NCBI GenBank assembly: GCA_965637545.1 | Contig: OZ281501.1 | Location: 18,910,001 to 18,974,000 of the forward strand | Origin: Phallusia mammillata | Taxonomy: Eukaryota | Reading direction: 5' to 3' | Length of the DNA stretch: 64,000 nucleotides | Shown here: one piece after another, positions 1-35,023 of the stretch | Position numbering within the stretch: the stretch's first letter is position 1 | Layout: each line of letters begins with the position of its first letter | Position numbers and translations under genes: made by a program | The notes under the pieces: model-generated | Database searches by the model: none | What the model was told of the DNA's origin: nothing | Seen by the model: only the letters and a program-made list of their open reading frames with translations

Positions 1-805
1 AGAGTTTTTTTTTCTTATCGGGTATATTTCTTCTTTCTGATTTGTTAAAATCCGACACATTGCGTAACACTGTTTCTTAATTTATAAACTTTGGCAATCT
101 CTGGAAACAAAATCACAAACTCGTTTCACTCAAACTGCCTAAAGCGAGTGGATGTTCAATATCATATAGAGTTGTATCCCAGGAAATCCCGGGTTTGGAC
201 AGAAACTTTCCCACTTTTATCCTAAAACTCCAACCCAATGTCAACTCAACACGTTGAAGCAGTATACATGACGTCAGTTTACAACGTTTTATTCATCCCA
301 CAATCTATGTGTGACGGTTAGTCAGGAAAACTTGCATTTATTGTGGATGTTCACAGTTTTACAGGATAAAACTGATGTTCTTACAACGACTTGTATTGGG
401 GATTAACCATATTTTTGCATGTTAACTTTGACCAACTTTTTAAAGTAATCTATAAAATTACTTTATCTTCGATTTTTTTCATAAATATTTTTTTTATAAT
501 TTTTTAGTTATTCAGATGCCTTTCAGATGTCGACGATTTTCCAATAAAATGGGTCGTGGGTTCGACTCCCGCGAATGGAAGTTGACCGTGCTTGGATATT
601 TGTCGATTTCGAGCAACATCACGATCTCAGATGTCGCATGAGCCGAACCAGAAAGTAATCTTGCCATTCAAGCACACGTGTTGAAGTTTTATTCGTCGAA
701 ACGTTGCGTGACGAAGCAACTCTGTAGCACGAATCAGCAAATACATAAGCATTATACGCCATTACATTCTCATTATTTGGTCGAATGGTGACATTTAACA
801 CAGAG

Positions 806-7969: not shown

Positions 7970-8158
7970 AAATAACAAACCTGCGTGGGAAATAACTAAC
8001 TTTCTTATCAAGGTTCAAAATGCCACAAACAACCGAAACACCTGACGATGATGTCTAAAATGTTCCATGGTGTCGTGCACTGTAAGTCCCAATATTCGTA
8101 AAGCTTTTGCCATTATTTTTGTTCCAGTTTTTCCTGCTCCAGCCATTATTACCCTCAT
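7970..8158 (-). pseudogene. Truncated sulfotransferase copy 3 (exon 1, intron 1 and a few bases of exon 2)
   Basis: MRVIMAGAGKTGTKIMAKALRILGLTVHDTMEHFRHHRQ at 8042-8158. After the exon-2 acceptor the sequence jumps straight into the intergenic spacer. Confidence 0.8.
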
Positions 8159-9050
8159 CTTTAAATGACGGTTAACTGAGGTCCTTTAATATTGATTTTT
8201 TGAAAAGTCCTAAAAGTCGTCAACTTAAGTTGCGCCCGGTGAATAGCCAAAATAATCCTGAAAGTTATTTATGAAGCACTGAGTTGATAGGTAATGATTG
8301 GAAATTCTTTTTAAACAACGCCACTAGGCCACGTTAAAACTAATCCAAAACTTCCAAAGTATTAAAATATATGCAACCATGAATTACCACATCTGTTTCA
8401 AGGTGGAACTGCAGAATAACTTGTCTCTCGTGCTTTTTAAAGATCCTGTTGTGTTATGAAAACGTCAGTCAAAAACTGTTCACACTTCACCCGAATCACT
8501 CACGCATTTTCACCCATACATCGATTTGCGATGGAAATTGCCGCAACTTGCAGCCACAACGCTTGACTAATGAGGCAGAACTCAGCAAAATATTGAATTG
8601 CAATCGACCAACCTGACATGAGGTTGTTTTGGGTCGGTAAGGCCTGCTCTGAAACACGGCGTTCAGTTCTGTTATAGCACTTAAGAAACTAATCAGCCTT
8701 TCAACCCACAGTTAAAGCTAAACAACAAAATGCTGCAACGAATGGCAAATCATGCCGAACCAACCAAGCAAACCCAAAACAAATACACAAGGTTTGCATC
8801 AGTGCGGTTTTGCGGTCAAAGGTAGGGAGATTATGTTTCGTAGCTGAAATAGTTTGTCTCCATTATTCAGTTTACTACTTTCACACAAATTGTATGAAAA
8901 TGCAGCTTTCTGATTTGTTGAAATCCTCAATTTATAAACATCGTTAATCTCGAGGCCTGGCGGAGCAACTCTGTAGCATGCCTTAACAAATACATCAGCA
9001 TTATACATTATTGCATTTTCACACTTTGACTCTTGTCATTTAACACATTG

Positions 9051-10103
9051 CTAAAGAAAATAAGAAACGCATGCTGCCATAAGACAAAATAACAATGACA
9101 CAATTACAAAAGCTTCACGTTTCATCTTCTGAAATGTTGGGTCATTTTTAAGCCACTTGTCATATATTGTTGCTCCGTGATTTTTGTGTGGAAACGGTTG
9201 GTTTGGAATTGGAAGGTTTAAGAAGTTACACAATGGTTCCCATCCTTCCTTCACGCTGCACACAAGCAACCTGTCTTTGGGAGCGTTCTGGTATAAATAT
9301 TAATGCAAATGAAGTTTGCAAAGTACTTATTTAGTAACAATATTTACAACTCACCATGAGAACAGCTGCGTTATGTTCTCTGTATCGTATTGTCCACACA
9401 TTTGCCCTAAAGTACCAGTTCGCAAATGGGAAAGAAGCCACGTGTTCTCCAAAGATGATTGTGACTAAATAAAATGAATAACGCCAGTTAGTTTTGCTTT
9501 AAACAGTGGTGTATTAAAATCGTTTTTAACAGTTTTACAAGATGTTGCTCTTACTGGTTTTGTTGAGAAAGAAAGATCCCTTTTGACACTTTGAATCTTA
9601 CTAAAATGGTAAAGGAATTTGAAAAATTTCCTTCCAGTTGGTGTAAACATGTACAGAAAATTGTTTGTTTTGTTGCGGGACATTTCAATGTGCTGGTTCA
9701 TTACGCTGCGAATGAAGCCCTTCTCATCCCGTTGTGTTAGAACTATCTGAAAACAACACACAATAGTAAACAAGCCTAATCAAATGACAGATGTACCTTT
9801 GCCTCTGGAAAAGCTTCGGCCAGTTGCTCCCAAAAGTAAAAGGTTGGAACATCAGTGACGGCATCGACATCTTTGTAAGACTCACGAATATCACCCAACG
9901 TCGCCTTCCCATCAATGTAATCATAACAAACCTGCGTGGGAAATAACTAACTTTCTTACCGATGTTAATCGAAATAACCGAAATACCTGTCGATGGTGTC
10001 TAAAGTTTTCCATGGTGTCGTGCACTGTAAGTCCTAATATTCGTAAAGCTTCTGCCATTGATTTGGTTCCAGTTTTCGACACTCCAGCCATGATTACCTT
10101 CAT
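9051..10103 (-). CDS. Sulfotransfer_4-like sulfotransferase, copy 4
   Basis: Exons 9987-10103, 9797-9931, 9602-9746, 9355-9464, 9051-9287, in frame. Has VTDVPTFYFW and a divergent exon 4 (ITIIFGEHVASFPFANWYFRANVW). Confidence 0.85.
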
Positions 10104-11196
10104 AATTACGCAATCGTCAAGTTTGGTCGTAGAAATATTGGTTTTGAAAACTTCACGTTGTATTGTAAACTATCCTGAGGATGGTAAAATCCGACTGTTG
10201 TCTGCATCATTTAAATGTCCAAGAAACAATTCAACAATAGCATCCAAGAGCGCTACTTGACTAAACACGTTTCAAGTTTTAAGTTATATTTAAGACACTG
10301 ATTTGTGCACGCAAACCTTTGTTAAGTGGAACTGCAGAATAATATTTGCCTCTCTGTAAATTTTTACTTATTACAGCAAGGTTAACTGTTGGAAGACAAC
10401 TTTCATCCTTAACGTACTTCACTCAACCAATAGTTAAAACTAAAGAGCAAATTGCTGCAACGAATGAGTAGTATCGCTTAACCAACCAAGCAAACCCAAA
10501 ACAAATACGCAATGTTGGCATCACTGCAGTATTGCGGTCAAAGTTGGGGAGAGTATGTTATGTTGCTATAATAGTTTGTCTCAATTATTCAGTTTAATAC
10601 TCAGTCCGGCTCGCTGATTGTATTTGAGTTTAACACTTCCACATAAATTTTCCTCGTTGTTATTAAAATGCTGCTTTCTGATTGGTTAAAATCCACAGCA
10701 CTCGTGACATTGCTTCTCAATTTATAAGATTCGTTAATACCTACAGACCTAGTTTCACTTTAAACTTGTTTGACTCAAACTGTTCAACCAAAGTGGATAG
10801 TCACGTGATGACATGATGACGAAACACCGATGACGTCAGTTTCGTCACGCTTGAACTGATCCTGATCTCGACTGTCTGTAGGTTACCTCTTATTTTCATG
10901 AACCTTGCCCCACTTTTTTTGTCGTGGTCTTTTTTTTCTAATATGTTTTTTACACTTTGCGGAAGCCTTCGAGTTGTCGAAGATTTTCCAAGTTGATTGG
11001 GTGGTGGGTTCGAATCCCGTGGATGGAAGTTGGCCGTGCTTGGATATTTGTCGAGTTCGAGCAACATCACGATCTCAGATGTCGCATGAACCAGCAGTAA
11101 GTAATCTTGCAAATAACTCAGCAAATACATAGGCATTATACACCATTGCATTCTCATTATTTTGCCTTTTGCCTAATGTTGACATGTAACATAAAG

Positions 11197-12377
11197 TTAT
11201 ATAAAACAAAAAACGCACGCTGCCACAAGACAGATTAACAATGATACAATTATGAAGGCTTCGCGTTTCATTTTCTGATATGTTGGGTCGATTTTAAGCC
11301 GGTCGTCGTATATTGTTGCTCCGTGATTTTTATGTGGAAACGGTTGGTTTGGGATTGAAAGGTTTAAGAAGTTGCACAATGGTTCCCATCCTTCCTTTAC
11401 GCTGTAGGCAAGCAACCTGTCCTTGGGAGCGTTCTGAAAACAAATTGATTCACAAAGTAATCGACTCATCAAGTTTAAAGCATTAAAATTTAAACAACTC
11501 ACCATGAGAACATTTGAATTATGTTCTCTGTATTTTATTGCCCACATGAGCTTACTGAAGGGCCAGTTTGTAAATGGAAAAAGAGGTGGAGGGCCTTCAA
11601 ACATCGCCACTACAAGAGTGAAACAAAATTTAACCGTTAAACAGGATATTGAAAAGTTTGGACATTGAAAAGCATCCGTCAAACCAGTACATTTGATTTT
11701 GTTTCGAAACTTACTAAAAATACGATAGAATTGGAACAATTTCCATCCAGTTGGGGAAAAAGTGAAAAGAAAATTTTGTTTCGTGTTGTTAGCCATCGCA
11801 ATATGTTGGTTTTCTAGACTTCGAAGATAACTCTTCTCTTCTCGTTGTGTCAGAATTATCTAAAAACGAAACACAGTGATAAAATATAAACATAATTGAA
11901 CTAAAAATGTTTTCACTGATATCCGAAGCATTATTTCGAAAATATTGTATTCTTTTCATACGGCCCAATGTTAACGTAACGCTTTATGAGGCGTGACTAT
12001 GTTGACTCAGGCAGGCACACATGGGTCCTATACATGTTCATACATGTTCAGATAGTAATGGTACCTTGGCCTCTGGAAAAGCTTCGGCCAGTTGCTCCCA
12101 AAGGTGGTAAGTCGGATAACCAATGATGGCATCGACATCTTTGTAAGATTCACGAATATCATCCAACGTCGCCTTCCCATCAATGTAATCATAACAAACC
12201 TGCGTGGCAAATAAACAACTTTTTCACCGAGGTTTAAAATGCCACCAATAACCGAAATACCTGTTGATGATAGAGAAAGTTTTCCATGGTGTCGTGCACT
12301 GTAAGTCCCAATATTCGTAAAGCTTCTGTCATTGATTTTGTTCCAGTCTTTGATAATCCTGCCATTATAACCTTCAT
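11197..12377 (-). CDS. Sulfotransfer_4-like sulfotransferase, copy 5
   Basis: Exons 12261-12377, 12065-12199, 11715-11859, 11503-11609, 11197-11433, in frame. Has AIIGYP in place of AVTDxP. Confidence 0.85.
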
Positions 12378-15207
12378 CTTTAACGATTGGTAACTTTAAA
12401 TCCTACCTTTACAGGAGCTTAATATATTTTTTCTGGAAACAAATAAATTGCACTCCAACATTTGAATTAACATTTCTTAAACAACGGAAATGATTCAAAA
12501 TCGGCTCCAAACGCGCAACTGAGATTTCAATTTAACTAAGACTCGCCAAGTCTGCAAATAACTGCTCAACACACAGACTACTACACGAGCCTCATTGGAA
12601 AACTAACGTAAAAACATTACCGCAACAATACATCAAAAAATGCCAGAAACTGTCGCTTCTGTATTTTCGTTTCAACAGGAAATCAGCAAGCTTCTGCATT
12701 GTGATGTGTTTCAGTTTATACAATTGCATCACTCATTTTTTTAGAACTACTTAACAACCAGTGAATAAGGGTTGGAAAATGAGTTTCACGTCTTGACAGT
12801 TCAATAAACCTAATTTCACGTTAAAACGATCAGAATATATCAACCCTAAATCGACATTTTTGCTTCAAATCTTGCAACTGACACTGCTTTCAAATATACT
12901 AGAACTCATAGATTGTTAAAAATAACTCGCCCTATGCGTTTGAGTGCACAACACAGAGACTAGTATAAAAACCTCTTTGGAAATCAACCGAAAAACAGTA
13001 ATGCAATCACAAATTACGTCAAAAAATGCCGGACATCGGTAAAACGTCTGTAATTAGTTTTCTTTACAACACGAAATCAGCAAGCTTCTTTGTTGTTTGT
13101 GTTTCAGTTTTTTCAATTGTATCCCTCAATTTTTTGAGACTTGTTTTCATTGCGGTATATGCATTAGTTTCAGTATGTACAGCAGCACCTATTATAATCG
13201 ATGCTATGAGACTATTTCGATAACTTCCCACTGTGTTCGTATTGAATGTTACATCGAGGAATAAAGGCATTTCCGCAATGCTCGTTTGGACTTTTTACGA
13301 AGGGTTCTTGTAACAATTTTTATTGCGGAAGAAAATATTTTCTACAGCATTGCATGTGGTTCACTAAAAAATCGTTTTCGTTTTTTTTCTCTGCTTATCG
13401 CTCAAACAAAATCTTACGTTAATGCAGATGTAGATGATTATGCTAATTATTGCGTGAGTTCACTAGTTCTTTATTGCTTTTGTGTAGGAATTATGACTTT
13501 TAGCTAAAGTTAAATTACATTATGAAGATAAATCCCGCCTATAAACAAAACCTAGTACCACTCAACCAAGTGATTTTAATGAAAATAACACACAAACAAT
13601 AATGACACACAAGACATAAGGTTAGAACATTCAACTGCAAAAAACAACAGCAATCTGACACTCAGCTCAAAGTAACTGCATTCAACAAGCGCACTGTACA
13701 ACTGCCTCGTTTACAACACTTTCCAACATAACATTAAACAAGGACATATATGCACAATCTGGTGGGCGTAAAATGAAACATGAAATTGGCGTGCCCTCAA
13801 AGCGATGTTATAACTTATACTTATAAGAGAATAATTACGATTAGATAATTACATGAAACTAGCAGGCTTTGAAACACAACGTTTGTAGCTGAATTTGACA
13901 ATGTTAGGCCACAGAAGATATCTCCCAGGTTCAGCGTGGCCAGTCCTGTCCTGTGAGCAAATGTTGACCTGCCCTGAGGGCAAATTGCGTGACTTTGTCT
14001 GACCTTGTGTCTTTGTACAGATAGCTAGGAGATCGGTGAAAGTTTGTTATAAACAAACATGTTGGTTTGACGCAACATGTGCATAAGTTTCATTATTGTC
14101 TTTTCTTTACTTTACCGAAGTTTAGGGTCGATACGGGATTAGATCTCACACCCTTGTGGTCGATACGGGATTGGAACTCACAACCTTGTATTATCAGCTT
14201 GGTCGTTTTGGTAGTGAATAATTTAAACTTGATGCTTTTTTCTTAACGACGGTTTTAAAGTCAAAAGGTTGCGCTGTTTGAAAGTGGAAAAAAGCAAAAA
14301 GAGGCCGACCGTATTAGCTGAACAGTTCTTTTACAAAAAATAAGAAACACACGCTGCCGTAAAACAGCTTCAACAGTTGCATGAAAAAAAAAACGTAACA
14401 ATACCTGAATCGAGATGCATTAAAAAGCAGATAGTCACCCCGTTATTTTGCGCTGATAAAAATTTGTGGCGGGGTTTTGGTTTAGAACAAAATCCAACTT
14501 AACAAGCAAAAAATGTTGAAAGCAATTGATTTATTTGAATAAGAAACTAATGAGCCTTGTTAACCCACAGTTAAAGCTCAACAACAAAATGCTGTTGCTG
14601 CTAGGTATAATATTAGGTTGTTAAAGTTGTGACGTATTAATTAAAACATTTTTCGGATCGGCAAACAGAACAAAGTGAACTGAATAGACCGAATTTAGGC
14701 TAGCAAGTGTACCTATGAGTTCCAATGTAGTCAAGTTGGGTAGTAATTTCAATGTTTTCGCGTTGAAATAGTGTATTGATTTGTCACGTAGATTTATCTG
14801 CTAACGAATTTAAATTACATCACGCAGCAAACTTAGCTTTGTTTCGGTCTTTTTTCAAAACAGTTTTGTAATAGGGTCGGGTTTCAGGCCTTGTTGTTAG
14901 GCCCTTTATACAGCGCTACCACTGATTGTAACATAAATAAAGTAACTTAGAAAAAACCAACTAGAATTGTTAAAAACTTGGAAAGGCGTAAGTTTGGAAG
15001 AGAAAAAGCGACATGCTTTATTTTTCAAACGTTTCGCCAAATGCTCATGCCATTATCATGATCATGGGTATTTTCATTATTAAACTTATAAACAAATCTG
15101 TATGTAGCGTTCCAAGGTTGGTTGTGAAATTTGAAGGTTGTTTAGAGATTTCGCGCAACTGAATCTAAGAGCCACATGGGCAGCTGAAACAACTACATCA
15201 AATAGAT

Positions 15208-19469: not shown

Positions 19470-20905
19470 ATGAAAGTTATAATGGCTGGGTTTTCGAAAA
19501 CTGGAACCAAAACAATGGCAGAAGCTTTACGAATATTGGGACTTACAGTGCACGACACCATGGAAAACTTTAGACACCATCGTCAGCTATTTCAGGTGTT
19601 TGTGGAATTTAAAACCTTGGCGAGAAAGTTAGTTATTTGCCACGCAGGTTTGGTATGATTACATTGATGGGAAGGCGACGTTGGATGATATTCGTGAGTC
19701 TTACAAACATGTCGATGCCGTCACTGATTACCCAACCTACTATTTCTGGGAGCAACTGGCCGAAGCTTTTCCAGAGGCCAAGGTACACCCCTTACTAACT
19801 TTTCTATCAGTAAGTTAATCATTGAGTTGTTTACTGTTCATCTTTGTCAGATAGTTTACACCAACCGGGATGAGAAAAGCCTGGTCCGTAGCGCAATGAA
19901 CCAGCACACTGCGATGGCTAACAATACAACAAGTAATTTCCTTCTCATGTTTTCACCAACTGGATGGTGGTTTTTCAAATTCCTTCAAACATTTCGTAAG
20001 TTTCAGAACAACATCACATTTGGCCTTCAAGGAAAATGCTTGTTGACTGATGTGGCCTTCATTGTACAGTTTGTTAACTTATTTTAAACGGTTACAGAAA
20101 CCTAAACCAAAAAATAACATGGAAAACACACTCAATGCGGCCACTTCGAGCCATCATAAACAAACAAATTTCCCACCAATGTCTGAGTGAAACATCCCAC
20201 TAGGTGTGAGTAAAAATTACACACTATTGATTTGATTGCAGATTTGTCTAAATTTGCTTTGTTAGACGATAAACCAGCGAGTTTGAAAAAGTTATTAGGG
20301 CTTGTGTTACAATTTCCCACCATCTGTAATTTAACAAATATGATTTCGTTTATGTTTTGCTGGTCTAAGACACATATTGTACCGTTGCAGTTGGGATTAT
20401 AGAAGGACCTCGACCTCTTTTTCCTTTTACAAAGTGGCCCGATAGCGCCATCTTGCGTACAATAAGATACAGACAACATCATGCAGCTATTCTCATGGTG
20501 AGGTGCTGAAATTCTGTGGCTTAACACTTTGCAGACAATCTTGTTATCTCTCAGAACGCTCCCAAGGGCAGGTTGCTTGTGTACAGCGTGAAGGAAGGAT
20601 GGGAACCATTGTGCAACTTCTTAAACCTTCAAATACCAGATCGTCCGTTTCCACACAAAAATAGTGGAGCAACTCTATTCGATGATCGAATTAATAATGA
20701 CTCATCATTTCAGAGGATGAAACGTGAAGCTTTTGTAATTGTGACATTGATATTCTGTTTAATGGCAGCGTGCGTTTCTTATTTTTTCTTAAAGACACAA
20801 TTTAGTGAAGGAATAAACCACGCAACTGCAGCTGAAGCAATGCATTTTGGCGTTAAAAACTTTGTTGAAGGCGCGTTTACACCACAAGCGGCAAAGCAAA
20901 GTTAA
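19470..20905 (+). CDS. Sulfotransfer_4-like sulfotransferase, copy 6 (mutated exon-1 donor, extended C-terminus)
   Basis: Exons 19470-19595 (cryptic donor; the usual donor at 19587 is CT), 19648-19782, 19851-19995, 20391-20497, 20555-20905. The last exon is 38 codons longer than in paralogs. Confidence 0.7.
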
Positions 20906-22266
20906 GCGGGCTATTCTCCACAATTGAATGAAGTGAGAATGTTCACACCAGACGCAGCCTTCGCTCAAATTCGTACAACTTCCCTTAAATTTCGTGGGCG
21001 TAGCAATAAACTGTCTAATTTTCCTGTGTGACTTGACAGCAGTACCAGGAAGAAGGCTGAAACATCTGCATGAGTTTGGGCTAGAGTTCATAACTTCGAA
21101 GCCACTTAGAAAGTCTGGCGATAAGTCAGTTGTCAGTCTTTAAGTTAACCATTCATGATGGTAACATTTGGTCAGAGGTTTTTTATCTTAGTGTAAGGTT
21201 TTGACTGCTAAGCTAGACAAGTGAACAATTACATGAAGACTAAGTATGAAAGGTACAGTGAAGATTTGTGTAAACGTAGATGGGCAGTCATGTTCGATGG
21301 CATGTTGGGGCAAGAGGAGGCACTTTCTTCCCTTAAAATCTTAATACACCTCAAATTTTGTCGAGAAAGCTTGATGAATGAAAAAGTATAATGCATGAAG
21401 AGGTAAAGGAGAGGAATCAATGAATGTCGAAATAAGCGAGTTTAACGAAGTCTGCCTTGTTTACATATATAGTGTTTCCATAATTGGAATTAGGCTTCTA
21501 AACGCAATACCGTCACAAAACAGTGAAACAAGATGACAAATGCCATCTACGTTCCATCGCGATTTTGCTAAGTCATGTAATAGTTTTTCTAAAAAACCTC
21601 GGTAAAGCAATCCCCCTATTATTTTTCGTTACGTATGGCGTACGACGTGAACGTTCAAGCGTGCAAAACTAACGTCATGGGTGTTGCGTCACCAAGTCAA
21701 ACGTGACCATTTACACCGGTTAAACAGGTTGAGTGAAACAAGTTTGAAGTAACACATGACTTGCAGAGATAAGCATATGTTTATAAATTGAGAAGCAATG
21801 TCTGTGTACAGGTTTTGACGACTCTAAACAAGCCCCTAGGCAAATTAGCCGACTAAAGTACAACATTATCTAAACTGATTATTCAAGCACCATGCAGTAC
21901 ATATCAAGTTGTAGCAACATTGATCTGGATTAAGATGGGCTAAAACGTTTCAGCTAAAATTTCAGCAATTATTGGCTGAAGTTGCTGTAGCAAGTGAAAT
22001 TAAAGGAAGGACAGACAATATCGTTCTGCATTTTCACCTACCAAAGAAACTTATACATTAACGGATATATTTTGAAAATTTCAACACTTTGCGAATTCAG
22101 GTTTACAAAACTTGCCCATGGAGTGGCGTTATATACAGCTATTTTAGAATCGTCACCAATCTCTTCATTGCTATCAGTACGAAATTACATTTAACTAATC
22201 TTAGCGGAAAGTTAACTACTTTTTGTCAAAACCAATATCAGGACCTAAGTTAATCCTCCCAAAAAC

Positions 22267-23670
22267 ATGAAGGTTATAGCTGCAGGAGTATCAAAGACTG
22301 GAACCAAATCAATGGCAGAAGCTTTACGAATATTGGGACTTACAGTGCACGACAGCATGGAACACTACAAATACCATCGTCAGGTTTTTCAGTTATTTGT
22401 GGGTTTTTAAACTTTGGTGAGAAAGTTAGTTATTTCTCACGCAGGTTTGGTATGATTACATTGATGGGAAGGCGACGTTGGATGATATTCGTGAGTCTTA
22501 CAAACATGTCGATGCTGTCACTGATTTTCCAGTCCATATATTTTGGGAGCAACTGGCCGAAGCTTTTCCAGAGGCCAAGGTATAATCGTTAATCTAGCTG
22601 TGTTGCATCAGGTGGATCCAGTCGTGGGATTCATTTTTTTGTCAGCCGGTACTATTACAAAAGTCTTATTATGCCAACCGGTTCGCTGATATCATAAAAT
22701 TTAGTGAGACGGTTCTATAGAACCCACCACCCCTTTTGACCTTGTTTCCAGATAATCTTAACCCAACGAGATGAGAAGAGCTACATTCCCAGTGCAATGA
22801 AGCAGAGAATAGCATTAGCAAACAACAAATCATGTATATTCCTTTTCACCTTTTCTCCAACTGGATGGAAATATTTCAAATTCCTTCAAGTTTTTCGTAA
22901 GTTTTAAAAAATATTAAAAATATGTCATGTTTGAGTTAATGAAAACTGTTTCTATGACAAACATGGTAAGAGTAGTAAAACTTTCTTTAAAAACCTTTTA
23001 AGACTTGACTTGACTGGAGATTCGACTTATAGGATTCGTTACCCAACCCTGGTATAATGCAGTAAAGAGATAGGGTTTAAACGACAAATAGTTTTAGATT
23101 TGGCTTACCTAACGCTTGCAGAAAGCAAGTATGTTACGACATGCCAATAACGGACTGAAATGTAATTTAAGTGACAAACATAATAATAAGTAAATGGTCA
23201 AAACGGTAAATTAATCAATATTACGCAGTGACGTAAATTGGCAGTATATGGTAAACAGTATATTTGCAGTTGGTGTCATGGATGGACATCAACCTCTTTT
23301 CCCATTTACAAACTGGCCCTTCAGCGCCAGCTTGCGGGCAATAAAGTATAGACAACATAATGCAGCAGTTCTCATGGTGAGTTGCTGAAATGTTGAAGCT
23401 AAATATTTTGGAGACAATCTTGTTTCTTTCCAGAACGCTCCCAAGGAGAGGTTGCTTGTGTACAGCGTGAAGGAAGGATGGGATCCATTGTGCAACTTCT
23501 TAAACCTTCCAATCCCAAATCGTCCATTGCCACACAAAAATCACGGAGCAACAATATACAATGACCGGGTGAAAAACGACCCAACATTTCAAAAAATGAA
23601 ACGTGAAGCTTTTGTGATTGTGTCATTAATATTCTGTTTTATGGCCGCGTGCGTTTCTTATTTTCTTTGA
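22267..23670 (+). CDS. Sulfotransfer_4-like sulfotransferase, copy 7
   Basis: Exons 22267-22383, 22445-22579, 22752-22896, 23270-23376, 23434-23670, in frame. Has VTDFPVHIFW. Confidence 0.85.
22615..22730. mobile_element. Degenerate hAT MITE (CAGTGGTGGGATTC family) in intron 2 of copy 7
   Basis: Similar to 27634-27813 and 42227-42404. Ends are eroded. Confidence 0.6.
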
Positions 23671-24814
23671 CCCTTTTTAACTGTTAAATATCTATCTTAG
23701 ACCAAATAATGAGAATCCAATGGTGTATAATGCTTATGTATTCGATGAGTCATGCTGTATAGTTGCTTCGTCACCCAATGTTTCGACGAATAAAACTTCA
23801 ACACGTGTCCTTCAAAAAAAATCTCGAAGGCATCTGAAAATTGTAAAAAACAATAGATTTGCAAAAGGAAGACGAAGACAAAAACTAGGGCAAATTCATG
23901 AAAATAAGGGGTAACCTACAAACAGTCGAGATCAGGATCAGTTCAAGCGTGACGAAACTGACGTCATCGGTGTTGCGTCATCATGTCACCACGTGACCAT
24001 CCATGTTGGTTGAACAGTTTGAGTGCAACAAGTTTAAAGTGAAACCATATCTGTAGAGATTAACGAAGTTTATAAATTGAGAAGCAATGTCACGAGTGTT
24101 GTGGATTTCAACCAATCAGAAAGTAGCATTTTAACAATAACTAGGAAGATTTGTCTGGGAGTGTTAAACTGAATAATAGAGACAAACTATTTCAGCGACG
24201 AAACATAATCTCCCCAACTTTGACCGCAATGCCGCAGTGATGCAAACCTTGTGTATTTGTTCTGGGTTTGCTTGGTTGGTTAAGCGTTTTGTTGTTTAGC
24301 TTTAACTGTGGGTTGAAAGGCTGATTAGTTTCTTAAGTGCTATAACAGAACTGAACGGTGTTCAAAGCAGACATTAACGACCCAAAACAACCTCATATCA
24401 GGTTTGTCGGTTGAAGCTCAATATTTTGCTGAGTTCTGCCTCACTAGTCAAGCGTTGCGGCAATTTGCTTCGTGAATCGCTGTGTGGGTGAAGATATGCG
24501 AGTGGTTTGGATGAAATGTAAACAGTTTGTGGTCGACGTTCTTATAGTTTCAAAAAGAACGAGCGATAAAATTATTTCTGCAGTTCCACCTTGAAATAGA
24601 TGTGGTTATTCATGGTTGTATATACTTTGGAAGTTTAGGTTTAGTTTCAAAGTGGCCCAGTAGCGTTATATGAATTTTTTTTAGAATCATTGCCTATCGA
24701 CTCAATGCTTTATAATTAAATTTCAGGATTAATTAGCTACTAACTGGGGGCAAACTAAGTTGACGAATTTAAGGACTTCAATATTAAAGGACCTCAGTTA
24801 ATTAATAATTAAAG

Positions 24815-25851
24815 ATGAAGGTTATAATGGCTGGAGCAGGAAAAACTGGAACCAAAACAATGGCTGAAGCTTTACGAATATTGGGACTTACAGTGCACGA
24901 CACCATGGAAACCTTTAGACACCATCGTCAGGTATTTCGGTTATTTGTAATTTCCAACCTTGGTGAGAAAGTTAGTTATTTTCCACGCAGGTTTGGTATG
25001 ACTACATTGATGGAAAGGCGACGTTGGATGATATTCGTGAGTCTTACAAACATGTCGATGCCGTTACACACTTTCCTGCCTATATATTTTGGGAGCAACT
25101 GGCTGAAGCTTTTCCAGAAGCAAAGGTACCATGCACAGTCAAGGTGTGTTGTTCTGCTACTGTGTGTTGTTTTTAGATAGTTCTAACCCAACGAGATGAG
25201 GAAAGTTACATTCGCAGCACAATGAACCAGCGTACCGCGATGGCCAACAACAAAACATGTATTTTTCTTTTTACATTTTCACCAACTGGTTGGAAGTATT
25301 TCAAATTTCTTCAAAGATTTAGTAAGTTCCGCAACAACTGTGCTTGTCAACAAAGCTATCGTAATACATTTGAAGACATATTTGTCTAAACTGAACAGCT
25401 GTGTCTACAACCACTCTTTATTGAACGGTCAAAATAATCACTTATTTCTTATAGTTGGAATAATCGAGGGACCTCGCCCACTTTTCCCATTTACAAACTG
25501 GCCCTTTAGTGCCATCCTGCGGAGAGTAAGGTACAGAGAACATCATGTAAATATTCTCATGGTGAGTTGCTGAAATTATGATGTTTTGCACTCTGTAAAC
25601 CGATTTGTTTCAAGAACGCTCCCAAGGGCAGGTTGCTTGTGTACAGCGTGAAGGAAGGATGGGAACCATTGTGCAACTTCTTAAACATTCCAATCCCAAA
25701 TCGTCCGTTTCCACACAAAAATCACGGAGCAACTGTTTTTGATGACCGGGTGAAAAACGACCCAACATTTCAGAAGATGAAACGTGAAGCTTTTGTAATT
25801 GTGTCATTACTCATCTGTCTTATGGCAGCCTGTGTTTCTTATTTTCTTTAA
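24815..25851 (+). CDS. Sulfotransfer_4-like sulfotransferase, copy 8
   Basis: Exons 24815-24931, 24991-25125, 25177-25321, 25455-25561, 25615-25851, in frame. Has VTHFPAYIFW. Confidence 0.85.
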
Positions 25852-26801
25852 CTCTATGGTAAATATCAACATGAGCTCCCCAAAATGCGTATGTTTTTGC
25901 TGAGTTGTGCTATATAGTTGCTTTGTCACGCAACGCTTCGACGAATAAAACTTCAACACGTGTCCTTCAATGGCAAGATTACTTTCTGGTTCGGCTCATG
26001 CGACATCTGAGATCGTGATGTTGCTCAAACTCGACAAATATCCAAGCACGGTCAACTTCCATCCACGGGATTCGAACCCACGACCCGATCAACTTGGAAA
26101 ATCTTGGACAACTCGAAGGCATTCGAAAATCGTAAAAAAACAATAGATTTGCAAATGGAAATAAGGGGTAATCTACAAACAGTCGGGGTCAGGATCAGGA
26201 TCAGTTCAAGCGTGACGAAACTGACGTCATCGGTTGTTGCGTCATCACGTTACCATCCACTTTGGTTGAACAGTTTGAATGAAACAAGTTTAAAGTGAAA
26301 CCAGATCTGCATACATTAATGAAGTTTATTATTTGAAGAGCAATGTCTCACAACGCGGGGGATTTCAACCAATCAGAAAGAAGTGTAATGAACCTGATAA
26401 GACAAAAAATATCTCTTTAAGCAACACAAAATAGTTTAGGCCGCAAAATGGCAACCTTAAAATTGACTGAGATGTGCTTTAGAATCATTGTGCAGCGATG
26501 TGATTGAGATGTGCTTGCTTAATCCAGAGTTATCAATTAGGCGTTTCAGCAAGTCGTTGTGCGGTCAGCTGTCTTGGTTCGGAAGGGTCAGAGGGACAAG
26601 TGTTGCGATTTTTGTTCCTTTCAGATACCCAATGTTAGTTCTTAGCAATATTAGCTATAGCAATTAAACCCTAGGTAATTAACACGCTAAGTTCGCACGT
26701 CACTTCAAATGTAAAGGTGTATAAAACTAGTTAAAGAATTATTAATTACACGAAATACAGCAAACTACTACTTAAAAGCAAAATGTATAGTGAAGTATTC
26801 T

Positions 26802-26958
26802 NNNNNNNNNNNNNNNNNNNNNNNNNNNNNNNNNNNNNNNNNNNNNNNNNNNNNNNNNNNNNNNNNNNNNNNNNNNNNNNNNNNNNNNNNNNNNNNNNNN
26901 NNNNNNNNNNNNNNNNNNNNNNNNNNNNNNNNNNNNNNNNNNNNNNNNNNNNNNNNNN
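26802..26958. other. Assembly gap (157 N)
   Basis: Run of N. Confidence 1.
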
Positions 26959-27633
26959 TTTGAAAGAGAGAGACATTTACCGAAACGAGCACTGGTCAGT
27001 TTACACTCGACGTTTATGGGGTCAAGCAAACACGTAACTGACGTCATCATGTCATCACGTGACCATCCACTTTGGTTAAGCAGGTTGAGTAAAGAAAGTT
27101 TGAAGTGGAATCGGATTGGAGAGATTAACTTAGTTTAGAATTTGAGAAGAAATGCAGAGGTTTTTTAGCCAATCAGAAAGCAACATTTTATTACCAACTA
27201 ACTTAGGATGATTATGGAAGTATTAAACTGAAAAATGGAAATAACTGTTACTCCCAACAAACTGGGTGCCGTTGGATTGCTACACTAGCCAATACGGCCT
27301 ATGTCTCGTTACCAGGTGCCCTGATGAGACCTCATAGGTTGAAACAGCGTGCACTGTCTGCAGCTGAAAATAAACTATTATAGCAACAGAACATAATCAC
27401 CTGAACCGCAAAGCAAAACCACAGCAGTGATGCCAACCTTGCAAGTTTGTTTTGGATTTGCTTGGTTGGTTAAGCGTGGTTTGTCGTTACAGCAGTTTGT
27501 GGTTTGGCTTAAACTCTTGGGTAAGAAGACTGAGTGAAGTAAGTATAGGATAAAAATTGTCTTGCTGTAGTAAGTAAAAATTTACAAAGAGTCAAATGTT
27601 GTTCTGCAGTTCCACCATGATAAGGGTTATATA

Positions 27634-27813
27634 CAGTGGTGGGATTCCGATTTTTTGTCAGCCGGTTCTATCACAAAAGTCATATTTTTCAACCGATTCT
27701 GTTACAAAAAGTCCATTGACAGTAACCAGTAATGCTAATCGGTTCGCTGATCTCACAAAATTCCGTGAGACGGTTCCATAGAACCGGTGCGAACCGGCTG
27801 AATCCCACCACTG
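27634..27813. mobile_element. hAT MITE (CAGTGGTGGGATTC family)
   Basis: TIRs CAGTGGTGGGATTC/GAATCCCACCACTG. TSD gttatata/gttgtata. Confidence 0.85.
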
Positions 27814-28049
27814 GTTGTATACAGAGAAGAGTGTATTATGTATAATTTGAAACTTGATTCGGGTTTACCTAAAACACAAGTAGAGCTCTTTGATGGTATT
27901 TAGAATTGTTTCTGGGTGATCGATTTATTGATGCTTAATACAACGTCCAGCCAACAATCGGTTTTTACCATCCTCAGCATAGTTTACATAACATCGAGAA
28001 GTTTTTAAAACTATTACTTTAAGACCTTATAGTTAGTTCCCACTTAAAA

Positions 28050-29184
28050 ATGAAGGCAATAATGGCAGGAGTAGCAAAAACTGGAACCAAATCAATGGCA
28101 GAAGCTTTACGAATATTGGGACTTACAGTGCACGACACCATGGAACATTTTCTCTATCATCGTCAGGTATTTAGGTTGTTAATTGTGGGATTTTTAACCT
28201 TTTAGGTAATTTCCCACGCAGGTTTGTTATGATTACATTGATGGGAAGGACGTTGGATGATATTCGTGAGTCTTACAAACATGTCGATGCCGTCACTAGG
28301 TTACCAACTTTTCACTTTTGAGAGCAACTGGCCGAAGCTTTTCCAGAGGCCAAGGTAAAATTGTCAAACAAACTTAATTGTTTTACTACTTTAATGGTAA
28401 AAATAACGGCCCAAATAGATGCGAAGAGCATGTCGAGCCGTTATTTTCACCATTAAACTTATGAACAGATCCGTACATGCATATTTTACTACTGTTTGTA
28501 GTTTTCAGATAGTTCTAACCCAACGAGATGAGGAAAGCTACATTCGCAGTGCAGAGAACCAGAGAATGGCGCTGGTCAACAACAAGACATGCAGATTTCT
28601 TTACACATTTTCACTCACTGGGTGGAAGTTTTTCAAATTTCTTCAAAGATTGCGTAAGTTTCGTATGTGCCTGTGTCAGAAAAACGTTTTGATACGTTTG
28701 AAGATCTATTTCGTCTAAACTCAATAGCTGCATTTACCAACATTGTTTACTAATCGCCAAAATTTATTACTTAACTTTTCCAGTTGGAATAGTCGAGGGA
28801 CCTCGCCCACTTTTTCCATTTACAAACTGGCCTTTTAGTGCCATCCTGCGGAGAGTGAGGTATAGAGAACATAATGCAAATATTCTCACAGTGAGTTGTT
28901 GAAATTCTGATGCTTAACAATTTGCAGACAATCTTGTTTCCTTTCAGAACGCTCCCAAGGACAGGTTGCTTGTGTACAGCGTGAAGGAAGGATGGGAACC
29001 ATTTTGCAACTTCTCAAACCTTCCAATCCCAGATCAACCGTTTCCACACAAAAATTCTGGAGCAACAATATACGATGACCGGCTTAAAATCGACCCAACA
29101 TATCAGAAAATGAAACGTGAAGCTTTTGTAATAGTGTCATTGCTATTCTGTTTTATGGCAGCGTGTGTTTTTTATTTTGTGTAA
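28050..29184 (+). pseudogene. Sulfotransferase copy 9, pseudogene
   Basis: All five exons are present. Exon 2 has a 2-bp deletion (gggaaggacg vs gggaaggcgacg, about 28249) and a TGG>TGA nonsense codon at 28319-28321. Confidence 0.85.
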
Positions 29185-30100
29185 AGAACAGTTCAGCAAA
29201 TACGTACATCCTCAATCTGCATATCACTGAACTCTTATTTCTAGCAATGTTATTTTGTTTTGCCTCACGATCAAGTGTTTCTTAAATGTTGTTTAAAGAA
29301 AACTGTTGTTTTGGTTTACATTGTGATGTCACACAAAATGGGTGCTGTTCGGGCAAATAAAACCTCAGCACGTGTCCTTACATAATACTTGTACTTAAAC
29401 TTAGATAAAGTAGAAAAATACTGTAATAAACCTTATGCACCTAAGGTAATGAAAAACAAAAACATCAAGTCATTCGTCCTTAAGATGTTGAAATATACAT
29501 ATATTTTGCCTTAACAGCATGAGCAGTAGCTTATTCAAATAGAATCTTCCGTGCCCTTATGTAAAACGGTTTTCCTTGATGGATCAGAAAATCGGTCAAA
29601 GGGCAGCAAACTGAATGTTCAAATTTGGACAAGCAATAAACAAAGAACGAAAATGAAAACGATTTTTAGTGAACCACATGCAAAGGGTTGTACAAAATAT
29701 TTTATTTCGTGAACAAATTGTTACAAGAACCCTTCGTAAAAAGTTGAGCATTGCGGAAATGCCTTTATTCCTCGATGTAACCTTTAATGCGATCACAAAG
29801 ATAATGTCTAGTGTCATAGCATCAATAATAATAGGTTCTGCTGTACAAACTGGAACTGATGCATATACCACAACGAACAATTAGTCTCACACTAAAACAC
29901 GATGCAATACAGAAGGCGGTTGATTTCCTGTTGTAACGAAAATTAATTACAATTGGAAGCTACTACAAAACGTTTTACATTCGATTGACATTTTTTTGAT
30001 ATAATTTGTCACTGTGGTACAGCTTTTCCGTCAGTTCCTGTGTTCTTATGCTAGTCTGTAGGGCGAGTTAGGTTTATCGAACTATATCCGTGAGACGAGT

Positions 30101-30200
30101 GGGTAAAAAACGACCCAACATATCAGAAGATGAAACGCGAAGCTTTTGTAATAGTGTCATTGTTATTCTGTCTTAAGGCAGCGTGCATTTTTTTTGTGTA
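30101..30200 (+). pseudogene. Isolated 3' fragment of sulfotransferase exon 5
   Basis: Encodes KNDPTYQKMKREAFVIVSLLFCLKAACIFFV*. No upstream exons are nearby. Confidence 0.75.
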
Positions 30201-30639
30201 ACTGTAGGCATAGATTTTTTATGTCAATTTGCAAAATACTTAGTTGTCACAAATTTACTTTAGTTTCGTAAACTTACATTTCAATATGCTTTCGAGTTTT
30301 ATGCGGTGTCACGCAACAGTATTGCTTCGTCAGCGTTTGTTGCTGGGATGATTGAAATTTTCACACGTGACCTCCATCTATCTAAGTTTAGACATCTTCC
30401 GTCGACGGGTTTCGAACCCACAACACAATCAACAATACAGTGCTTAACAACTTTGTTTTACCGACAAACGGATGGCGCCCGAGAGGTTTGAAAGAAATTA
30501 CACAGCTACTTCTACTGCATGCAAAGTGGCGAAAATTGGAAGAAGAAGAAATTAAAAAGAGATCACAACAAAAAAGTAGGTCACAGTTCATGAAAACCTC
30601 CAAACTCGAGCAAACAAGATGGTTGGTTTGAATTGTCTA

Positions 30640-31010
30640 CCGAGGTCGTAAAACAACCGAATACTGATAAGGGATTGATGACCACGCGGTTGGCTATGCA
30701 AACAAAGTTTGTTTGACTTTTGGCCACAACCAATACTGTGGCTTTAAATTGGGTGACATGGTAGTTTCTTTCGATACAATTCATGGTTCGCAAGATATTT
30801 TTACAGCACTTTTAATTGGTGAAGTTCAGGTGCATTCCCATTCTCCCAGCAGTTAATGGTATATTGCAGTTTTGAGTAGACAAGGCTATATCATGAAATT
30901 TTGAGGTTTTTAAGGGAACATATTTTCTCAGTTTATACATCAGACAAGTTGTGTTTGTCTGTAAATTATGTTTAAAGCTGAGTGATGTGCTTGAACCAGT
31001 TTAAATTTTT
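30640..31010 (-). mobile_element. Degraded L2/CR1-group LINE ORF2 3' fragment
   Basis: Minus strand reads LMYKLRKYVPLKNLKIS*YSLVYSKLQYTINCWENGNAPELHQLKVL. This matches the non-LTR RT C-terminal pattern LYKLR.YVP..TL..IY.SL.YS.L.Y....WGNA...L..LQN. Confidence 0.65.
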
Positions 31011-31082
31011 CATCCGCTGTAACAGAAATATAATTCATTTTTGACTTGATAAAGTGTTGTTGTCGAGATAAAGCCTAAAAAG

Positions 31083-32186
31083 ATGAAGGTAATAATGGCA
31101 GGATTGTCGAAAACTGGAACCAAAACAATGGCAGAAGCTTTACGAATATTAGGACTTACAGTGCACGACACCATGGAAAACTTTCTATATCATCAACAGG
31201 TATTTCGGTTATTTGTGCCATTTTAAACCTTGGTGAGAAAGTTAATTACTTGACACGCAGGTTTGTTATGATTACATTGATGGGAAGGCGACGTTAGATG
31301 ATCTTTGTGAGTCTTACAAAGATGTCGATGCCATCATTGGGTATCCGACTTACCACCTTTGGGAGCAACTAGCCGAAGCTTTTCCAGAGGCCAAGGTACC
31401 ATTACTAAATATCAACATGTATGGGACACATGTGTGCCTGCCTGAGTGAACAATCGGGTCGTTTGAAACGTTACCTTAACATTGGACACTATGAATTTTG
31501 TATTTTTTGTATTTTATCACTGTGTTTCGTTTTTAGATAATTCTGACACAGAGAGAAGAGAAGAGTTATCTTCGAAGTCTAGAAAACCAACATATTGCGA
31601 TGGCTAACAACACGAAACAAAATTTTCTTTTCACTTTTTCCCCAACTGGATGGAAATTGTTCCAATTCTATCGTATTTTTAGTAAGTTTCGAAACAAAAT
31701 CAAATGTACTGGTTTGATGGATGCTTTTCAATGTCCAAACTTTTCGAAATTCCTGTTTAACGATTGACTTTTGTTTCACTTTCGTAGTGGCGATGTTTGA
31801 AGGCCCTCCACCTCTTTTTCCATTTACAAAGTGGCCCTTCAGCAAGCTTATGTGGGCAATAAAATACAGAGAACATAATTCAAATGTTCTCATGGTGAGT
31901 TGCTCAAATGCTGTGGCTTTAATTTGCAGACAATCTTGTTTCCTTTCAGAACGCTCCCAAGGACAGGTTGCTTGTGTACAGCGTGAAGGAAGGATGGGAA
32001 CCATTGTGCAACTTCTTAAACCTTCCAATCCCAAATCAACCGTTTCCACACAAAAATAGTGGAGCAACAATATACGACGACCGGCTTAAAATCGACCCAA
32101 CTTATCATAAGATGAAACGTGAAGCTTTTGTAACTGTGTCATTGATGTTCTGTCTTGTGGCTGCATTTGTTTGGCATTTTCTTTAA
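31083..32186 (+). CDS. Sulfotransfer_4-like sulfotransferase, copy 10
   Basis: Exons 31083-31199, 31261-31395, 31537-31681, 31788-31894, 31950-32186, in frame. Exons 2-4 are nearly identical to copy 5 (AIIGYP). Confidence 0.85.
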
Positions 32187-32759
32187 CTTCTGACATTGTT
32201 CCTGACTAATTGAGACTAATTTACCGCATATTTTAATTTCCAAAACCTACATGTTAATATCCATTTTTTCTGCTTCCTCTTGCAATGTTGTGGTTACGGA
32301 GATGAATAAATTTTGATACGTAACCAAAGTATTTAAAGTATAAATACCTACTATCGACGGGACTCGAACCCACGACCTAATCAACATCGACAAAAAGTAG
32401 GTTTATTCTAAAATATCAAGGTTAAAGTTCATGACAACCTACCAACTCGAAAATGTCATCAAAGATGACTTTCTGGGTTCTGGAATGCATTCTGTGCAAC
32501 CGTGTGTGCTGAGTGACGTACATCAAAATCTTTCGAAATCGCGAAGAAACATAGCTTTGAAGACATAGATTTGAATAAATAAGAGCAACATGGTTATGTT
32601 ATTGTTTATTTGCTTATGTTACCGCATCATTTATTGCCGTAACTAAAACAAAAGGCAAAAAAATACTATGGACAAATAATTTAAACTATTCGCTGCACCA
32701 TCGAAAACATAAATTTAATGGACACGAATCGTTGTACCCAAAGTCGTTAAACAACCGAA

Positions 32760-33100
32760 TACTGATAAGGTCTTCAAGATTACGCGGTTGGTTATGCAAA
32801 CAAGCTTGTTGACATTGGTCAGTTTGCCGTGTTGTGGCTTTAAATTGGGTCACGCGGCAGTTTCTTTTGATAAGATGTATGATTCGCAAGCTATTATTTT
32901 GCAGCACTTTTAAATGGTGAAGTTCAGGTGCATTCCCACTGCCTAAGCAAGTCATGGCATATTGCAGTTTTGAGTAGACAAGGCTATGATTTCAAATTTC
33001 AAGGGTTTTAAGGGAACATATTTTCTTAGTTCATACATCAGGCCAGAATAATTAACAAGTTGTTTTCAAAGTTGAATGATGTGCTCCGACTAATTTAATT
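32760..33100 (-). mobile_element. Second copy of the degraded L2/CR1-group LINE fragment
   Basis: Reads LMYELRKYVPLKTLEI*NHSLVYSKLQYAMTCLGSGNAPELHHLKVLQNNSLRII. Homologous to 30640-31010. Confidence 0.65.
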
Positions 33101-33539
33101 GATCATGTGTTATAACACTTATATACATAAGCTATATAAAACTGAGGCAGACAACTGAAAAAACTGAAACACAATACAATACAAAAGCTTGTTGATTTCC
33201 TGTTGTAACGAAAATAATTACAATCGGAAACTAGTGCAAAAACGTTTTATCGGCGTCCGGCATTTTTTTGACATAATTTGTCATTGTGGTATTTCTTTCC
33301 TGTTAATTTAAAAAGTGGTTCACATACTAGTCTGTGTGTTGTCCGCTCGAACGTATAGGACGAATTTCTTTAAGTTGTGAGTTCCAGTTAATTTTAAGGC
33401 TGGATCAGTCGCAACACTTGAAGCTTTAAAGTTGATTTTAGGGTTGATATATTCTGATTTTTTTCAGCTTAAAGTTGGTTTATGGAACTGAGAAGCCGTG
33501 AAACTTATTTTCAAACTTGTTATTCACTGGTTGTGAAAG

Positions 33540-35023
33540 ATGAAGGTAATAATGGCAGGAGTATCTAAGACTGGAACAAAAACAATGGCAGAAGCTTTAC
33601 GAATATTGAGACTTACAGTGCACGACACCATGGAACATTTTCTCGATCATCGACAAGTATTTCGGTTATTTGTTGCATTTTAAACCTTGGTGAGAAAGTT
33701 AGTTATTTCCCACGCAGGTTTGGTATGATTACATTGATGGGAAGGCGACGTTGGATGATCTTCGTGAATCTTACAAAGATGTCGATGCCGTCACTGATTA
33801 CCCGATTTTCCACCTTTGGGAGCAACTGGTCGAAGTCTTTCCAGAGGCCAAGGTACTATCACTAACTATAGGGACCCATGTGTGCCTGCCTGAGTCAACA
33901 GTCACGCCACTTAAAACGTTACCTTAACATTGGGCCGTATGAAAACAACAAAAACTGAATGAAGAATACAAACTTTGAAGTTCGTGATATTGCTTGTGCA
34001 ATAATACTAATAAAACATTTCTAGTCAAATGCATTGATTTAATACTGTGTTTCGTTTTTAGATAGTTTTAACACAAAGAGATGAGAAAAGTTATCTTCGA
34101 AGCGTTGAAGACCACCTTGTAGCGATGGCTAACAACACAAAACTAAATTTGCTTTTCACTTTTTCACCAACTGGATGGAAATTGTTCCAATTCTATTGTA
34201 TTTTTAGTAAGTTTCGAAAGAAAATTGAGAGTTTAGAAAACCTGTGCTTGAACATGTATTAGCAGATGTGACTATTTTCACAACCAAAGCACTCACGGTG
34301 TTTTGCAATCTTGTTACATTCAATCTTAACATTTTAGACACAAGAGCTGAACAACCTTCGATCGTGAACACGTGTAATAAAACATGGCGGCCGTGAACAC
34401 AGCAACAAACAAACGTAACAATACAGATAGTGATCTCATAAATATTTAACTGATTTCTATATATTGTTCAACCAAATCAATGTATTAAGTAAGAAATCAA
34501 TCGGGTCTTTTTAGCCACCAATGCGATATTATAAGACATACCTTACTTCTTCAAGTCACTGAAGATTATTTTTCCAATTAAATAGTTTAACTATTGTTTT
34601 ACTTTCGTAGTGGCGATTTTTGAAGGCCCTCCGCCCCTTTTTCCATTTTCAAAGTGGCCCTTCAGCAAGCTCAGTTGGACGATAAGATACAGAGAACATA
34701 ATTCAAATGTTCTCATGGTGAGTTGCTGAAATTTTAATGCTTTAAACTTGATGAGACGATTACTTTGTGAACCGATTTGTTTCCAGAACGCACCCAAGGA
34801 CAGGTTGCTTGTGTACAGCGTGAAGGAAGGATGGGAACCATTGTGCAACTTCTTAAACCTTCCAATCCCAGATCGTCCGTTTCCACACAAAAATCACAGA
34901 GCAACAATATACGACGACCGGCTTAAAAACGACCCAACATTTCAGAAGATGAAACGTGAAGCTTTTGTAATTGTGTCATTGATGTTCTGTCTTGTGGCTG
35001 CATTTGTTTGGCATTTTCTTTGA
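33540..35023 (+). CDS. Sulfotransfer_4-like sulfotransferase, copy 11
   Basis: Exons 33540-33656, 33718-33852, 34062-34206, 34611-34717, 34787-35023, in frame. Has VTDYPIFHLW. Confidence 0.85.

Follow-up and report, generated by a model that had tools for sequence, protein, structure and literature searches.

A 64,000-nt stretch of the Phallusia mammillata genome (assembly GCA_965637545.1, contig OZ281501.1, positions 18,910,001 to 18,974,000; referred to as the window, with positions counted from its first nucleotide) harbors an array of approximately eleven duplicated sulfotransferase genes (PF17784). Exon 2 of these genes is almost uniform among the copies except for a short patch around an aspartate which, judging from the alignment, is the counterpart of the catalytic Asp91 in the sulfotransferase SULT-OR of Schistosoma mansoni (SmSULT-OR). 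The copies are a recombination and gene-conversion mosaic, and the patch probably represents old paralog divergence spared by the conversion that homogenised the rest of the exon rather than fast adaptive evolution. An exon that is invariant in DNA apart from one variable window mimics positive selection directed at a binding pocket, which is how an earlier note, made from the sequence without database searches, had read it; here the pattern would be the footprint of gene conversion around an old divergence. Seen as a whole, the array would combine ordinary concerted evolution with a modestly interesting natural series of replacements at the catalytic base.

Gene models with canonical splice sites gave five exons and proteins of 246 amino acids, and eight copies were aligned without gaps across all 246 codons. 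In copy 8 (24815 to 25851, plus strand), which is intact with GT-AG at all splice sites (exons 24815-24931, 24991-25125, 25177-25321, 25455-25561 and 25615-25851), the patch comprises codons 63 to 74 (25060 to 25095, AVTHFPAYIFWE, with the peptide VTHFPAYIFW inside it) and corresponds to the catalytic loop, which links a beta-strand to a helix. A second variable stretch lies at the end of exon 1 (codons 30 to 39, 24902 to 24931), where the N-terminal turns of helix 30-45 are encoded. All patch peptides listed in the earlier note for copies 1, 2 and 4 to 11 were present in the rebuilt models, as were the four exon-1 ends SMENFLYH, TMENFRHH, SMEHYKYH and TMEHFLDH. The codons reported at the position of the aspartate were also correct, namely CAC in copy 8 (25069-25071, His66), GGT in copy 5 (12119-12121, minus strand) and GGG in copy 10 (31339-31341).

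The variation in exon 2 is confined largely to this patch, with 23 of 30 columns variable compared to 16 of 105 elsewhere in the exon (Fisher's exact test 5e-10, for a patch chosen post hoc). A scan statistic with permutation preserving codon position confirmed the clustering within exon 2 (p < 5e-5). The description of the patch as hypervariable is valid in comparison with the exon-2 flanks but not with the whole gene, since it is as diverse in nucleotides (0.25-0.28) as exons 3 and 4 (0.25-0.37), while the value for the flanks is 0.04-0.07. The unusually uniform segments are the core of exon 1, the flanks in exon 2 and the early part of exon 5. At third codon positions, diversity was 0.45 in the patch and 0.07 and 0.14 in its flanks; the diversity of intron 1 was 0.18. 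The patch would look hypervariable only because its flanks were homogenised. Across the whole family, the most variable positions are +1, +3, +4 and +5 after the aspartate, the same as in the patch.

The mosaic structure of the copies is supported by several lines of evidence. The pairwise homoplasy index was 0.382 compared to 0.453±0.008 in permuted alignments (p < 2e-4). Maximum likelihood (ML) trees of the patch with exons 3 and 4, of exon 5 and of the exon 1/2 flanks were mutually discordant. In the approximately unbiased test, the topology of the patch with exons 3 and 4 was rejected by exon 5 (0.0065) and by the exon 1/2 flanks (0.03), and the topologies of the other segments were rejected on the data of the patch with exons 3 and 4 at <1e-6. 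Four old paralog clades, consisting of copies 1, 2 and 6, copies 5, 10 and 11, copies 7, 8 and 9, and copy 4, are about 30% apart in exons 3 and 4. The patch shows the clades of these two exons, (1,6), (5,10,11) and (7,8), and therefore carries an old divergence that conversion did not erase. Copies 6 and 7, members of different clades, do not differ at any of 105 nucleotides in the exon-2 flanks and differ at 11 of 30 in the patch. The exon-1 patch groups copies 4, 6 and 8 against 1, 5, 9, 10 and 11, in conflict with the exon 3-4 tree, and copies 4, 6 and 8, from three different clades, are only 1-2 nt apart in it. Copies 5 and 10 are 2-3 nt apart in exons 3 and 4; in the late part of exon 5 they are separated by 26 nt, and copy 10 is closer to copy 11 there (9 nt).

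The array is arranged in two inverted arms, with copies 1, 2, 4 and 5 and the relic copy 3 on the minus strand (806-12377) and copies 6 to 11 on the plus strand (19470-35023). The near-identical copies 5 and 10 are located on opposite arms, which points to exchange between inverted repeats as well as tandem ones. Introns 1 and 4, being short and alignable, tie the adjoining exons together as homology blocks (300-400 nt). No alignment is possible for introns 2 and 3 (50-904 nt), leaving exon 3 isolated and unconverted. The intron comparison is based on a multiple alignment of intron 1, semi-global pairwise identity being uninformative (0.77 for shuffled controls).

Diversifying selection on the acceptor pocket, as claimed in the earlier note, was not borne out. 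The comparison of M8 with M7, named there as the check, with an omega of 1 or less as the outcome that would contradict the claim, gave a likelihood ratio test (LRT) statistic of 0, as did M2a versus M1a, both for the patch with exons 3 and 4 on their own congruent tree and for the whole coding sequence. Omega was below 1, and no site was placed in an omega>1 class in either data set. For these models, an own implementation of the Goldman-Yang codon likelihood was used (F3x4, branch proportions fixed at M0 with free scale, 8 beta categories), which recovered positive selection in data simulated on this tree with omega=4 for 10% of the sites (LRT 36-38) and gave null results under M1a. Counts according to Nei and Gojobori (NG86) yielded a dN of 0.27 and a dS of 1.15 for the patch (dN/dS 0.23), a dS of 0.095 for its 5' flank, and a dN of 0.24 and a dS of 0.87 for exon 3, with dN values of 0.24-0.26 for exons 3-4. 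In an ML partition test, omega was 0.33 in the patch and 0.26 in the flanks (p=0.68), whereas the synonymous scale was 5.3-fold higher in the patch (2.21 versus 0.41, LRT 15.2, p=1e-4). The patch was indistinguishable from exon 3 in both parameters. A common synonymous rate forced on patch and flanks inflated the omega of the patch to 1.02 only. Hence, NG86 counts, site models and the partition test gave no evidence for DIVERSIFYING selection on the patch, where purifying selection is as strong as in the remainder of the gene (omega of about 0.3).

The homology of the variable aspartate to the catalytic residue of the Schistosoma enzyme, also proposed in the earlier note, held up. The copies were searched exon by exon, and an uncharacterised public P. 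mammillata protein, here termed P0001, served as the full-length stand-in. It was returned by an exon-2 profile search of 1.84 billion representatives, differs from copy 7 in 5 of 246 residues and is collinear with the splice model. In the pairwise alignment of P0001 and SmSULT-OR (residue numbers offset by 2 from the chain index, as set by Phe39), D66 aligns with Asp91, residue 67 with the oxamniquine contact Leu92, R90 with Arg115 and S98 with Ser123. Asp91 of SmSULT-OR has been called catalytic (PMC7167500) and is hydrogen-bonded to the accepting hydroxyl (PMC4618941); together with Leu92, it is among the drug contacts of SmSULT (PMC12414012). A profile of 37 full-length homologues matched Schistosoma SULT structures at 1e-30 to 1e-35 and the bacterial enzymes Cpz8 and SgdX2 at 1e-36. 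Schistosoma SULTs were not reached by single-exon phmmer searches against the PDB, which gave bacterial matches only (E 0.4-0.8), and a search with an exon-3 profile gave no match. In the AlphaFold model of P0001 (pLDDT 95.9), the patch residues 65-72 form a loop between strand 63-64 and helix 73-79, and the best Foldseek matches of this model were Cpz8, Schistosoma SULTs and SgdX2 (TM of about 0.7). The location of the variation in the acceptor pocket was only partly supported. Two patch positions correspond to Asp91 and Leu92, but variable positions are not overrepresented among residues equivalent to SmSULT drug contacts (6 of 14 compared to 123 of 245).

According to the proposed mechanism, ongoing gene conversion or unequal exchange would have homogenised a block formed by exon 1, intron 1 and exon 2, and likewise a second block formed by the end of exon 4, intron 4 and exon 5. 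Within the first block, the old divergence would have survived in two islands, one being the catalytic loop (codons 63-73) and the other, at the end of exon 1, the initial turns of helix 30-45. Conversion tracts overwriting paralog-specific active-site residues may have been selected against, so that the islands persist. Innan and Teshima reportedly modelled such divergence peaks around functionally distinct sites in concertedly evolving tandem paralogs. The array resembles conversion-resistant islands of this type in its homogenised flanks, a short island with an old tree, a recombination signal and an ordinary omega; it differs in that selection on the island, and thus against its conversion, is something we infer only from the location on the active-site loop.

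Several observations weigh against this interpretation. The islands have very abrupt borders (within 3-6 nt). On its 3' side, the patch is followed by a flank of just 36 nt before an unalignable intron begins, a small length for a separate conversion tract and one compatible with constraint acting on the flanks at the nucleotide level. The synonymous estimates for the 11-codon patch are based on about 8 synonymous sites, and the partition test forces one topology on segments with different histories. With eight sequences only, a few sites at omega 2-3 could escape detection. The lack of enrichment of SmSULT contact equivalents among the variable sites also does not favor selective preservation of the islands.

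Among the alternatives, a real mosaic with neutral islands is rather unlikely. Here, a 30-nt stretch diverged by 30-50% would block heteroduplex extension or be restored as a block by mismatch repair. The divergence of the patch between clades (9-16 of 30 nt) is sufficient to impede homologous exchange, and both its ordinary omega and the distribution of variation over contact-equivalent residues are compatible with neutrality. On the other hand, both islands coincide with elements of the active site, one with the catalytic loop and the other with the helix contributing Met38, Phe39 and Ile42 in SmSULT. Moreover, the exon-1 island itself was exchanged between the clades of copies 4, 6 and 8, which shows that divergence alone does not block exchange.

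Also unlikely is an origin of the pattern without any conversion within exon 2, in which nucleotide-level constraint (splicing enhancers of a short exon, mRNA structure or codon choice) fixes the flanks and the patch evolves at the normal rate of the gene. The sharp boundaries would be explained in this way, as would the conserved 36-nt 3' flank, which stops exactly at the exon-intron junction next to the unalignable intron 2; in addition, the flank residues V-D-A, W-E-x-L and F-P-x-A-K are conserved throughout the family. Constraint on exon 2 does not account for an intron 1 that is alignable in all copies while introns 2 and 3 are not, nor for the significant incongruence of the flank, exon 3-4 and exon 5 trees and the significant homoplasy index. 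Furthermore, the pseudogene copy 9 still has the common flank sequence in spite of its neutral-looking private substitutions.

Recurrent diversifying selection on acceptor-pocket residues as the driver of patch turnover, with the rest of exon 2 simply conserved, is very improbable, as the presence of the catalytic residue and the Leu92 equivalent in the patch, the family-wide variability after the aspartate and the raised omega under a forced flank rate are opposed by LRT statistics of 0 without any omega>1 class, by a patch omega not different from that of the flanks at a much higher synonymous rate, by a dN equal to that of exons 3-4, and by the fact that even the forced-rate model gives an omega of about 1 and not above.

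Independent of how the patch arose, the copies differ in the residue at the position of the catalytic aspartate. The aspartate of the T-D-x-P motif is kept in copies 1, 2, 4, 6, 7 and 11, while copy 8 has a histidine and copies 5 and 10 a glycine; the three forms are otherwise about 75-80% identical proteins. The Gly and His copies are under purifying selection. For copies 5 and 10, compared over codons 30-168 where both are sisters, 9 synonymous and 3 nonsynonymous differences were counted (omega 0.07, p=5e-5). Selection thus maintains the Gly protein, a possibility raised in the earlier note, and the Gly codon itself differs synonymously between the two copies (GGT and GGG). The Gly copies retain K-T-G-T-K, Arg90, Ser98, His162 and F-P-H-K-N. 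The private changes of copy 8 comprise 14 synonymous and 8 nonsynonymous substitutions (p=3e-5). Five of these 22 changes are found within 13 nt around the His codon (codons 64-68, 25063-25077; scan p=0.009), where GTC ACT GAT TTT CCA was changed to GTT ACA CAC TTT CCT, four of the changes being at synonymous third positions. Such a cluster points to a micro-conversion, with a paralog beyond the window as the unseen donor, or to a multi-nucleotide event.

Among approximately 215 representatives of the family, the aspartate column contains D in 195, G in 13, A in 3, E in 2, S in 1 and H in none. Glycine is thus recurrent at this position (about 6%), with a degenerate P-loop in some of the proteins and not in others; copies 5 and 10 do not belong to the non-Asp relatives with degenerate P-loops. 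A residue compensating for the aspartate was sought in Gly-type proteins, but Arg-Glu in place of Arg-Asp at 90-91 is seen in Asp as well as Gly types and is therefore no correlate of Gly. Three relatives (P0020, P0078 and P0109) have Gly or Ala in place of Asp together with a degenerate P-loop (K-C-A/R/C-T-K) and are candidate pseudoenzyme lineages elsewhere in the family.

The earlier note had suggested that copy 8 uses a different chemistry; this is better put as a possible return to the His base of classical SULTs. The classical motif is K-T-H-L-P, with spacings of 22 from His to Arg and 8 from Arg to Ser. Copy 8 is parallel to it in V-T-H-F-P, with spacings of 24 and 8. His66 of copy 8 could therefore plausibly act as general base by analogy to classical SULTs, which use 3'-phosphoadenosine 5'-phosphosulfate (PAPS) and a conserved His as general base upstream of the Arg and Ser that bind the 3'-phosphate (PMC11677658), the His being part of a K-x-H pair (PMC9356239). 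Classical SULTs belong to a different Pfam family (PF00685), and copy 8 has Val instead of Lys two residues before the His. Assignment of copy 8 as a classical cytosolic SULT was considered and rejected, as exons 1-3 gave no match to the PF00685 (Sulfotransfer_1) profile and V64-T65-H66 does not contain the Lys of the K-x-H pair. Copies 5 and 10, to judge from their motifs, would still bind PAPS but have no side-chain base.

Tentatively, the array may be regarded as a natural series at the catalytic base, with Asp ancestral and His and Gly derived; purifying selection acts on each form, and the motifs for PAPS binding are intact throughout. Provided that the His form has activity, and that the Gly form either works on acidic acceptors such as phenols and catechols without a base or is a pseudoenzyme binding PAPS or a ligand, the Asp-base mechanism would be more plastic than assumed. 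The Asp, His and Gly states in selectively maintained proteins offer a ready-made test of Asp91 as general base in the drug-activating Schistosoma family. Under such a plastic mechanism, the array could also underlie species-specific sulfated metabolites of ascidians, one example of which are the sulfated-sterol sperm attractants.

With regard to family membership, exons 1 and 2 of copy 8 matched PF17784 (Sulfotransfer_4) with 35.5 and 34.0 bits (cut-off 22.8) and exon 3 with 18.7 bits; PF17784 is also present in P0001 and all homologues. The P-loop K-T-G-T-K-S/T is found in all copies, aligned with R-T-G-T-K-S of SmSULT, and R90 and S98, aligned with the 3'-phosphate-binding Arg115 and Ser123, are invariant across all copies. 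Every copy encodes a hydrophobic C-terminal tail of 20 residues after basic residues, a predicted tail anchor located in the last approximately 25 residues (25775-25848 in copy 8, where the hydrophobic helix is preceded by K-M-K-R-E). Such an anchor would put the catalytic domain on the cytosolic membrane face. The next relatives after Phallusia, found in Clavelina and Ciona, are at most 45% identical, so that the array appears to be a lineage-specific Sulfotransfer_4 expansion in Phallusia. For ascidian biology, this documents a lineage-specific expansion of putative membrane-anchored small-molecule sulfotransferases.

The closest known systems are SULT-OR of S. mansoni (Smp_089320; 4MUA/4MUB) and its orthologues in S. 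haematobium and S. japonicum, which share PF17784, the fold (Foldseek E of about 1e-11, TM of about 0.7), the P-loop K/R-T-G-T-K-S, the T-D-x-P loop with Asp91 and the aligned Arg115 and Ser123. The ascidian proteins are only about 25% identical to these enzymes, do not have the 4-residue and longer insertions of the fluke proteins, and stem from about 11 arrayed loci, some of which naturally carry His or Gly in place of the aspartate. The best structural and profile matches were Cpz8 (9KF1/9KF2, caprazamycin) and SgdX2 (8Y9P, sungeidine), at Foldseek ranks 1-2 and 9, with V-D-W-P at the position of the ascidian T-D-x-P. Both are soluble bacterial enzymes of biosynthetic clusters, about 29% identical to the ascidian proteins and not encoded in paralog arrays. 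In comparison with the soluble Schistosoma and bacterial relatives, the tail anchor is found only in the ascidian proteins.

A blastn search of the window with the exons of copy 8 gave ten five-exon loci and several fragments. The GC content of the window is about 0.37, and the introns are short with GT-AG borders. Copy 1 (806 to 2828, minus strand; patch 2554-2586) and copy 2 (4674 to 6696, minus strand; patch 6422-6454) are identical, look intact and are of the Asp type (VTDYPTYNFW). They are contained in a perfect direct repeat of 2,937 bp (578-3514 and 4446-7382, offset 3,868 bp), which stems from a very recent tandem duplication or else from a duplication in the assembly. Copy 4 (9051 to 10103, minus strand; patch 9830-9862) is of the Asp type as well (VTDVPTFYFW). 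In its exon 4 (9355-9464), the acceptor AG is located 3 nt upstream of the homologous position, adding one codon, and the first 28 nt are unrelated to the other copies. Together with neutral-looking private changes (12 synonymous, 33 nonsynonymous), this marks copy 4 as possibly a decaying gene. Copy 5 (11197 to 12377, minus strand; patch 12098-12130) is intact and of the Gly type (IIGYPTYHLW).

On the plus strand, copy 6 (19470 to 20905; patch 19717-19749) is of the Asp type (VTDYPTYYFW) and a doubtful gene. Its intron-1 donor (19587-19588) is changed from GT to CT, with an in-frame GT 9 nt downstream, and a 1-nt insertion near the end (20780-20905) removes the stop codon and extends the open reading frame for 38 codons beyond the tail anchor, to 20903. 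Copy 7 (22267 to 23670; patch 22514-22546), the near relative of P0001, looks intact and is of the Asp type (VTDFPVHIFW). A run of 157 N (26802-26958) is located between copies 8 and 9. Copy 9 (28050 to 29184; patch 28289-28321) is a pseudogene with Arg at the Asp position (VTRLPTFHF*). Its exon 2 contains a deletion of 2 bp and an in-frame TGA (TGG to TGA at W73), and the private changes of this copy are 6 synonymous versus 18 nonsynonymous. Copy 10 (31083 to 32186; patch 31330-31362), of the Gly type (IIGYPTYHLW), looks intact; in exons 2-4 it is the sister of copy 5, whereas exon 5 is similar to that of copy 11. The latter (33540 to 35023; patch 33787-33819) looks intact, is of the Asp type (VTDYPIFHLW) and is the sister of the Gly pair in exons 2-4. 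Copy 3 (8042 to 8158, minus strand) is a truncated relic with a lone exon 1 and intron 1, breaking off 9 nt into exon 2. Further relics at 14331-14367 (minus strand) and 30101-30193 (plus strand) are exon-5 fragments encoding the tail-anchor region, and the occurrence of such relics fits a birth-and-death history of the array.

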